A stretch of 64,000 nucleotides of DNA, taken from positions 62,001 to 126,000 of the forward strand of contig CAJFCJ010000021.1 in NCBI GenBank assembly GCA_904063045.1, read 5' to 3'. This DNA comes from Dimorphilus gyrociliatus (taxonomy: Eukaryota > Animalia > Annelida). This document shows positions 22,150 to 25,100 of the stretch, one piece after another. Within the stretch, counting starts at the first letter, position 1; every line of letters starts with the position of its first letter. The notes beneath the pieces are model-generated. The model was not told where the DNA came from. It made no database searches and worked only from the letters and a program-made list of their open reading frames with translations. Position numbers and translations under genes: made by a program.

Positions 22150-25100
22150 TCAAATGTGAGGAAGATGATCCCTGTCCTTATCTTTCTTATTTTTCGACAT
22201 GCCCGGAATTGGTGAATTGTCTTTTAGTGAAATTCCGACAGATAAGGAAGGTAGTCCCTTTTCAAATGGCGTTGCTTTGGGACCTCTCTGTTGACCTTTC
22301 TCTACACCGTGTTGGCCATGCCTCCTAGGTGGCCTATAGGGAGCGTGGTCACGTCCAGTACTTTCCAATAATTGTTCCATATCGCGTATGAAAGGCCTTG
22401 AGAAATATGGATGGTTCAGGAGATCTGTACATCTGGCTCTCTGCTCCGGATCCATAGCAAAGCATATTTTCATAAAATTTAAAGTATTCGCTGTGACTCC
22501 TGAGAATTTCGCTTCTAATGGATCTCGGTCCTTAGAAAAGAAAGAAGAAAAACAATGATAAAATCTTTTCCTAATCTTATTGTTCCATGAAACTTTGTTC
22601 ATAAACTCTGACGCCACCTATCGTTTCATTTATGTAAAATTTTATTGGTCTAGGCTGTTTGTACAGTTCTTGCCCGACGATATTTATATAGTCCCATTAC
22701 TAATATTGGCTGAACAACTATTGAAATAGAAAATTTGTCTTACCGGAGGATTAGGTATAGTCATGGCCTTGAAGTAAGGATTCTTGCTGAAAGCTTCAAC
22801 GTGTCTAGGAATGAGGTCGCCTAAGGTTCTCTTGATTAGGTATAATTGATCTACATCAGATCGACCTGGCCACAGAGCTTGACCAGTTATTAATTCAGCA
22901 AACACGCAACCAATCGCCCATATATCGACTGGAGGACCGTATTGGGTATCACCGACAAGTAATTCTGGTGCCCTGTACCATCTCGTCGCAACGTAATCGG
23001 TATATTCACCACCAGGACCAGCTAATGATTAAGAAAATAGCAAATGAAAATTAATAAAAATTTGATCCTAAATGAATTAGGATATTTACTTAATAAACGA
23101 GCGAAACCAAAATCGCATAATTTAACGATTCCCTTTGAGGAGACGAGAATATTTTCCGGTTTTACGTCACGATGTATGCACTATAACGGAAAGATAAGTA
23201 TTTATATTAGGTTCGACAAAGATAAAGAGAAGAATCTAAAAGAGAAAGACAAGGAGAGAAAAAAGCGGGGGAGTAAAAAGATTATTAATATTGTTATGCA
23301 TACATTATGGTCGTGGCAGAAATTAACAGCAACGCAAGTCTGATAAATCATCTTCTTTATCTTATCTTCAGGTAATCTGTAAAAAAATATGATAAACATT
23401 CAATTAAATATCCGAGTTATCAACAAACAATCTAAAACATTGTGTACAATATATTAGTATGTACACAACAAAGGAAATATATAAATTAATATATAAAGAC
23501 AAGTTTTTACTCCTTTCTCTCTTTTAGCTAAGGCATTAATTAGCATTTATAGTTCAACACAAACAAAGAACTTTGAAAGGATTCAGCTTTCCTGGGTAAT
23601 TGAACAATGAATCCTTTGTCCGAGTTTCGATCTAATTGGCGGAAGCTTGTAAAAGACTAATTCTCTAACGCATAAATAAATACATCTTTTTTGCTGTCTA
23701 ATTAATATCTGTACGAAATTCTAACAACAAAACACTTTTATATATTGTCTTATTCATTTCCTTTGTTTAACTTGTTAAACTATAATAATTAAATCGCTGC
23801 AATAAGTAAAAGAAGGAAGGAGGGTATATATATATATATAGAACAGTTCATTTCCATTCTAAATACATATATTATTCAATTAGTTAAATAATTATAAAAG
23901 AATTACACTGAAAAAGTTAAAAATTCTAAACTTGTATTCAATGTGAATGAATGTTTTAGTTTTAATTATAATAGTTTAATATATTGTATGTCTATATGAA
24001 TTAAGCTTCTTGAAAGAAAGCTTCGTGAGAGAGAAAAAAAGCTAGCGAACATAACAGACAACACACAAAAAGGTATAGATTAACCACTCTTTTTTGAGAA
24101 TAGTTTAAATAAACTGTTCAATTGTTATTAAATATTCAACGAGAAAGGGAAAATAGGGATTTTTTTTGTCTGGTTGCGAGTGTATATGTGTTTATTTCTC
24201 TTCTTCATTATCTCTCTCTCTCTCTCTCTCGCTCTTTCTCTCTCTATCTATCTATCTGTCTGTCTCTGTCATTTATTCCTTTTCAAATTTTTCTCTATTT
24301 CATTGAATTAACGTTTAACAAAACGATTAAAGGAGTGTTAATATTTTCTCAAGTCAGCCCATAACCCACTTTTTTCAATAGACAAACTATAGAATCATTA
24401 ACGCATTTAATGTTAAATAATTGATAAAAGGAGATATTTTTCTTCTTTAATAATATATAATCAATCGTTTAACATTCTATTAATAGACGAGAAAAAAAAA
24501 CAACTTTTTCTCTTATAGCTTTATTCTATTTTCTCATCGCTTTAAGGAATTTATTCACTAGATATTTACGTAACCACTTAGGTTTTATAGTTACCTATTA
24601 TAATGGCTACTTGAAGTAATTTTCAATACTTAATGGGAATATTGGTTGGAAAGATAGGACTCCACTCACCCTCTGGGATGCCTGTCGAGTTCGTGGAGGA
24701 CGGTATGATCAATGTATTCGAACACTAAATGAAGTTTGCGTTTTCTTTTGAACACTTCGAGTAAATTCACTAAGTTACTGTGCTTCAATTGCTGTGATGA
24801 ATAAAAAGCAAAAAGCATCTAATTAGTAAAAAGTATCTTACCCTTTTCCATTTTCAGAGAGAACTGTTAACAAGTCCTTCTCAACATACTCAATTACCAT
24901 ATACATAGCCACCGACAACTTACCATTCGCCCTTTTTGATTTTTTACGTTTAATAACATCAACCAAATTAACAAGGTTGACATGTTTTAATTGCTGTATA
25001 TAAACATATGTATGTTTTCTATAATAACAATCTATAGAGGTACAAAAGCATTGAGAAAAAAGGGGGGAAAAAACCAGAGAATTCCTCATAAAAGTGAATG

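Follow-up and report, generated by a model that had tools for sequence, protein, structure and literature searches.

Mutually exclusive pairs of homologous exons are known in the kinase domains of the CMGC group, in the JNK genes (MAPK8/9/10, exons 6a/6b) and in similar MAP kinase pairs. The JNK exons are located in the C-lobe and alter substrate docking rather than the gatekeeper or the hinge, and there is good evidence for both forms at the RNA and protein levels. In alpha-tropomyosin, exons 2 and 3 are mutually exclusive because a branch point is positioned too near the upstream donor. A tandem duplicated, mutually exclusive pair in the N-lobe of a kinase, including the ATP-binding region, is found in FYN (exons 7A/7B, corresponding to FynB/FynT; PMC9741552). 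The FYN pair is old and spans the SH2-kinase linker and the glycine-loop side of the lobe, with strong, tissue-specific expression of both isoforms. For CDKL genes, a literature search yielded no mutually exclusive exon pair.

Here we describe two neighbouring copies of exon 2, named 2a and 2b, in a CDKL1/4-type gene of the annelid Dimorphilus gyrociliatus. The gene lies in the window, which is the whole stretch of 64,000 nucleotides of genomic DNA that was analysed. As in FYN, where one gene gives two kinases, the pair consists of homologous neighbouring exons that would swap a part of the N-lobe. In comparison with FYN, the CDKL pair spans the β4-β5 region, the gatekeeper and the hinge, is not found in six other animal loci, and only one of its copies is seen in mature RNA. 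The arrangement also resembles that of alpha-tropomyosin, as the CTAAT motif of the downstream exon is only 19 nt from the donor of exon 2a, although here the exclusion is suggested by sequence features. Exon 2b matches the canonical exon 2 of CDKL1 and CDKL4, with the same edges, and among the loci compared only this genome shows a second copy upstream of it. Our main reading, to which we assign a probability of roughly 0.5, is that exon 2a arose by tandem duplication of the ordinary exon 2 and has been retained as a mutually exclusive alternative that is used rarely or only under certain conditions.

The CDKL1/4-type gene and its two copies of exon 2

The gene has six exons on the minus strand, with edges set by the joints of RNA contigs (Table 1), and encodes a CDKL1/4-type kinase of 370 aa. 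A domain scan finds Pkinase matches on its exons. Among the matches listed in a profile search, the best full-length relatives carry the names CDKL1 and CDKL4, and exon 2b is identical to human CDKL1 (PDB 4AGU) at 34 of 40 residues (E 2.8e-17). The gene also shares the structure of the CDKL1/CDKL4 kinases, with an intron after ...REIRMLK and an exon 2 that starts with QLKH. These observations support its assignment as a CDKL1/4 orthologue of the CMGC group, and bear out the CDKL identity proposed in a first-pass annotation of this DNA. The exon edges at 27996 and 23376 that were named there are real splice junctions in the RNA contigs.

Table 1. Features of the CDKL1/4-type gene (window positions; a slash marks a splice site)
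Feature	Position	Strand	Description
Exon 1, coding part	27996..28163	minus	MEKYEK...REIRMLK; donor 27996/27995; 27996>24791 joint in runs X3, X4 and X5
Intron upstream of 2a	24994..27995	minus	3.0 kb, about 23% GC; patchy RNA contig cover at 2-20x
Exon 2a	24842..24993	minus	Candidate alternative exon, 152 nt, phase 0 to 2; Ile gatekeeper, 10-residue β4-β5 insertion
Intron between 2a and 2b	24792..24841	minus	50 nt; CTAAT branch-point-like motif at 24826-24822
Exon 2b	24670..24791	minus	Constitutive canonical CDKL1 exon, 122 nt, phase 0 to 2; Phe gatekeeper
Exon 3	23304..23376	minus	Takes 2a or 2b in frame
Exons 4-6	23180-23090, 23021-22744, 22530-22153	minus	Remaining kinase domain and tail; RNA joints, translation, Pkinase match

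Exons 2a and 2b have the same entry and exit phases, AG/GT sites at their borders, and the same first four residues (QLKH). The acceptor and donor are ...tatatacag/CAATTA and AAAAGG/gtaaga for 2a, with the donor (AGG/gtaaga) being strong, and ...catcacag/CAATTG and CAGAGG/gtgagt for 2b. Both exons cover positions 54-92 of the kinase profile, and 18 of their 40 aligned residues are identical. Relative to 2b, exon 2a contains an in-frame insertion of 10 codons (30 nt). The homology of the two exons, their shared phase, consensus splice sites and 50-nt spacing had been described in the first-pass annotation, and every coordinate of that description is correct when checked against the sequence.

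Translation of the spliced products shows that the two exons cannot be combined freely. With 2a alone the open frame has 380 aa, and with 2b alone it has 370 aa. Joining 2a to 2b gives a stop after ...GKGN, at 108 aa, since a TGA (24787-24785) is reached two codons into 2b. Skipping both exons shifts the frame, and a stop follows two codons on, after 58 aa. Either exon alone thus keeps the frame while both or neither break it, so that they are usable only one at a time, and the tandem duplicates are mutually exclusive by frame. Both predictions made earlier, a stop after two codons upon double inclusion and a frameshift upon double skipping, are thereby confirmed. The GGTAAGT inside 2a, considered as an alternative donor, is not productive, as it breaks the frame with either partner, and the AGs upstream of the 2a acceptor, considered as alternative acceptors, give exons that are out of frame.

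The introns flanking the pair have features of their own. Intron 1 has a length of 3.0-3.2 kb, compared to a median of 66 bp for the introns of this species (bioRxiv 10.1101/2020.05.07.078311), and may carry regulatory elements, as unusually long introns in this genome often contain open-chromatin peaks (same reference). Long (TC)n/(GA)n tracts are located in both flanking introns (24201-24270, 26210-26262 and 26846-26895). In the unspliced transcript, complementarity exists between the (UC)n tract before 2a and (GA)n tracts further upstream as well as downstream of 2b, over up to 56 nt at 79% and over 23 nt perfectly. Duplexes between these tracts could loop out the exon pair, or the tracts could be plain microsatellites.

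The swapped kinase segment and the sequence evolution of exon 2a

The swapped segment was proposed earlier to contain the gatekeeper and the hinge, and the standard alignment with Phe80 of CDK2 agrees with this. The gatekeeper is the Phe of LVFEY in 2b and the Ile of MVIEY in 2a. The product of 2a would therefore be a CDKL kinase with Ile replacing the Phe gatekeeper, a hinge of sequence EYVEKDLL, and a basic β4-β5 loop that is longer by 10 residues. The suggestion that this loop introduces a new nuclear localization signal is weak, because KRKRK is already present at the corresponding position of the canonical exon.

Among solved structures, 2a matches CDK9 most closely. Residues 74-116 of CDK9 align end to end with 2a, and its loop has nearly equal length, but the similarity to the β4-β5 loop of CDK9/CDK12/CDK13 is weak (E 0.009, about 38% identity). 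The exon position, the phase and the first ten residues of 2a show that it was copied from the CDKL exon and is no fragment of CDK9.

Only 61 of the 120 aligned bases are common to 2a and 2b (51% identity, or about 49% divergence), indicating that their split is either old or fast. The differences at codon positions 1, 2 and 3 number 21, 10 and 28. Exon 2a has no stop codon, and it is recognized as kinase positions 54-92 with a Pkinase score of 14.2 bits. Its G+C content of 0.34 is like that of the other exons, compared to 0.23-0.27 in the flanking introns, while at third codon positions its G+C (0.34) is no different from the value for the rest of the coding sequence (0.38).

In neutral simulations with intron base composition, the open frame is retained in 5-9% of the trials (a probability of no stop of 0.05-0.09), and an open frame together with 18/40 identity is obtained in 0-1.4% of them. 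Given no stop and equal identity, the BLOSUM62 scores of the 22 replaced residues sum to +10, compared to -12.7 ± 8.5 under neutrality (P = 0.003). All 16 of the hydrophobic positions are kept in 2a (P = 0.04). These tests of constraint are conditioned on a candidate that was picked for looking intact. Exon 2a nevertheless shows constraint at the protein level, and the tests together favour a past as translated protein.

These values bear on a first alternative, that 2a is a relic, which was used once or never, is no longer included in mature mRNA and is slowly decaying, with its RNA signal coming only from pre-mRNA. We consider this less likely than our main reading, though a serious contender. 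The identity test alone is not significant, as the most generous neutral model gives an identity of at least 18/40, given no stop, with a probability of about 0.2, which is not rare and is in keeping with a relic. Against it, at this level of divergence and in a compact, deletion-prone genome with 77% A+T, an unselected segment of 152 nt would rarely combine a frame without stops and a 30-nt insertion that is in frame with both splice sites, a G+C content like that of exons, replacements as conservative as those seen here and the retention of all hydrophobic positions.

RNA contigs and splice signals

Public runs were screened with 33 sampled 31-mer words from 24670-24993, and the contigs of runs X3, X4, X5 and X6 were aligned to 22400-28250. 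The share of words present exceeds 0.30 only in runs X2, X3, X4 and X5, with values of 0.94 for X2 and 0.67 for X3. In run X6 a share of 0.30 corresponds to exon 2b alone. About 12 further runs, most of which are typed as RNA or carry no type and some of which are coral or marine metatranscriptomes, show a share of exactly 0.30, and they therefore hold only 2b words, with no 2a words among those sampled.

The exon 2b words at a share of 0.30 come from runs X8-X19, which are labelled as other organisms or as coral and marine metatranscriptomes, and this suggests that marine samples from aquaria and the field often contain the worm or a strain nearly identical to it. Run X6 (2015), labelled as another organism, departs from the window at about 3-5% of exon bases (22400-23180 and 28050-28224) and has a 3-nt replacement at the edge of exon 4, where the joint 23177>23304 has ACA in between. 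These differences indicate a divergent strain or a sibling lineage.

In the available RNA, practically every finished message contains exon 2b. The joint 24670>23376 is present in contigs of all four runs, X3, X4, X5 and X6, and the joint 27996>24791 in those of X3, X4 and X5; in X6 the join to exon 1 is represented by a loose contig end that has the sequence of the exon 1 end. The contigs containing 2b have depths of 939, 267, 98 and 33 in X3, X4, X5 and X6, respectively. No contig in these four runs joins 27996>24993, 24842>23376 or 24842>24791.

The depth of 2a is like that of an intron, with values of 20, 8 and 4 compared to 939, 267 and 98 for 2b. The contigs that cover it run unspliced through its acceptor into the upstream intron (24842-25866 at 20x in X3, and 24913-25077 at 4x in X5, where 2a is covered only in part). 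Another piece of intron 1 in X3, 26892-27221, has a depth of 17x, so that the depth over 2a is as expected of plain pre-mRNA. The 2b message outweighs 2a by at least 25- to 50-fold, so that in these samples no more than roughly 2-4% of the message would include 2a. The use of 2a in RNA is at best rare, with the qualification that assembled contigs drop rare variants. The earlier claim that one gene yields two kinases is thus possible, but no contig joins 2a to exon 1 or to exon 3 in the four runs. The presence of 2b in every contig of mature message, the agreement of 2a depth with the surrounding intron, the unspliced acceptor and the dozen runs with 2b words only are all as expected of a relic.

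One contig behaves differently. The X3 contig of 1025 nt (24842-25866) stops exactly at the last base of 2a, its predicted donor, and words from the 50-nt intron are missing from the contigs of this run. In a de Bruijn assembly such an ending is expected where a splice branch leaves from the donor, and it may point to some splicing from there, which counts against a relic. The mature-transcript contigs of the four runs contain 2b alone, whereas 2a is seen only unspliced at its acceptor and, in a single contig, ending at its donor.

The same contig bears on a second alternative, that 2a is part of an alternative first exon that starts inside intron 1, with the ATG at 25089, and encodes an N-terminally truncated, catalytically dead protein. 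The contig is unbroken from 25866 to the 2a donor, leaving the 2a acceptor unused, and an open frame of 83 codons spans 25089-24842. We nevertheless regard this as highly improbable. The depth of 20 is close to that of the other intron 1 pieces, as for pre-mRNA; the product would have no glycine loop, catalytic lysine or helix αC; and a search of 5.8 billion proteins with the 83-codon frame around 2a gave no match, so that no such protein is on record.

Of all acceptors in the gene, that of 2a is the weakest; its pyrimidine tract is the poorest, at a fraction of 0.53, and the last 70 nt before the site contain no YTRAY motif. The weakness fits a rare use of 2a, and equally it and the missing branch motif would fit a relic. 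For the 2b acceptor, the only branch-like motif is the CTAAT in the 50-nt intron. Its A is 31 nt from this acceptor, compared to 26-29 nt in the other introns of the gene, and 19 nt from the donor of 2a, which confirms the distance given in the first-pass annotation.

A mechanism for our main reading can be proposed from these signals. The use of 2a would be restricted to a cell type, a stage or a sex, in which the donor of exon 1 is joined to the weak acceptor of 2a. Because just 19 nt separate the donor of 2a from the branch point of 2b, this donor would probably be unable to pair with 2b and would instead go on to exon 3. Any message containing both 2a and 2b would be removed by nonsense-mediated decay via its stop codon. 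The steric argument is not proof, because very short introns are no obstacle to splicing in this species (median 66 bp; bioRxiv 10.1101/2020.05.07.078311). The stronger version of this reading makes 2a a true mutually exclusive exon, specific to a cell type, a stage or males, that swaps the gatekeeper (Phe to Ile), the hinge and the β4-β5 loop. We hold this version tentatively, at somewhat under even odds.

If the 50-nt intron is occasionally removed in spite of its short branch distance, exon 2a would act as a poison exon. The resulting TGA at 24787-24785 would lead to nonsense-mediated decay that tunes the level of the kinase, and there would be no second protein. Double inclusion does place this stop in 2b, introns of about 50-70 nt are normal here (median 66 bp, same reference), and a 68-nt intron elsewhere in the gene is spliced in the RNA contigs. 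Decay would also explain why mature contigs containing 2a are absent despite the contig break at the 2a donor. We consider this alternative improbable, however. The joint 24842>24791 is absent from the RNA contigs, the position of the sole branch-like motif of the 2b acceptor argues against splicing of the 50-nt intron, and conservation at the protein level, which a poison exon does not need, is seen in 2a.

Two other signals in the RNA alignments concern the remaining introns. High RNA depth at 23772-23967 and 26516-26711, considered as a nested gene or small RNA, is due to (TA)n-type low-complexity matches to unrelated contigs, and an Rfam scan of the two segments gave no match. At position 22534 of the window, in the intron between exons 5 and 6, contigs of X3, X4 and X5 match the window rightwards, while leftwards they continue for up to 255 nt of G+C-rich sequence that is absent from the 64 kb. 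This may reflect either chimeric assembly of the contig or the splicing of an alternative 3′ part of the gene from another place.

Exon 2 in other species and the meaning of a second copy

Six genomic loci, that of Capitella teleta (KB305378) and five other animal loci from ENA assemblies, were compared by tBLASTn with 2a, 2b and the whole protein. Each has a single exon 2 of the 2b type, 78-88% identical, which starts with QLKH and has the same edges. No exon like 2a is found by tBLASTn in the intron before exon 2 in any of the six. The edge itself is ancient, as all but one of the 120 short matches listed for an exon 1 query, which come from many species, are reading frames that enter an intron directly after the RMLK of ...REIRMLK.

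A profile built from pieces of the protein listed 120 CDKL1/4 proteins, of which 118 could be scored; the worm's own protein is not among the 120 matches listed. The spacing between RMLK and HRD is 66-67 residues in 117 of these 118, and the 10-residue insertion of 2a is present in none of them. The single outlier in spacing is a mispredicted Macrostomum protein and not an insertion isoform. The 50 residues of 2a gave no match at E <= 0.001 among 1.84 billion representative proteins, in a search where a query of this length has low power, and a metagenome scan with 2a returned only ordinary CDKL sequences of the 2b type. A JGI metatranscriptome contig (L010:317-1456) contains an intronless CDKL1-type frame of 379 aa, in which the exon 2 region starts like 2a and the remainder is of the 2b type.

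Both copies together are therefore found in none of the six loci or the 118 proteins, and the best reading is that 2a is a lineage-specific duplicate exon. The absence of a counterpart in the animals checked is also what a relic would predict. Of the first-pass proposal that a decaying duplicate would carry stops or lack conservation, the first part speaks for an exon, as 2a is free of stops and constrained, while the second does not, as a tBLASTn search finds no counterpart in Capitella teleta or the five other loci. The interpretation of the pair as the source of two kinases is likewise supported by the homology, the frame logic, the exchange of gatekeeper and hinge and the constraint, and is weakened by the RNA contigs and by the absence of 2a from the other animals checked.

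The CDKL family, to which the human disease gene CDKL5 belongs, controls cilium length. If 2a is a retained alternative exon, one cilia-related kinase gene would give two ATP pockets, and this would be the first swap of gatekeeper, hinge and β4-β5 loop by splicing in the CDKL family, and a rare one in any kinase. Should 2a prove to be unused, it would be an ordinary leftover of exon duplication, and would illustrate that intact-looking duplicates need junction reads before an isoform is called. If it is used, splicing by itself would change the gatekeeper and hinge of a kinase, which set the shape of the ATP pocket and the sensitivity to inhibitors, and the locus would serve as a natural experiment. 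It would also mean that new mutually exclusive pairs can arise and persist in an otherwise shrinking genome.
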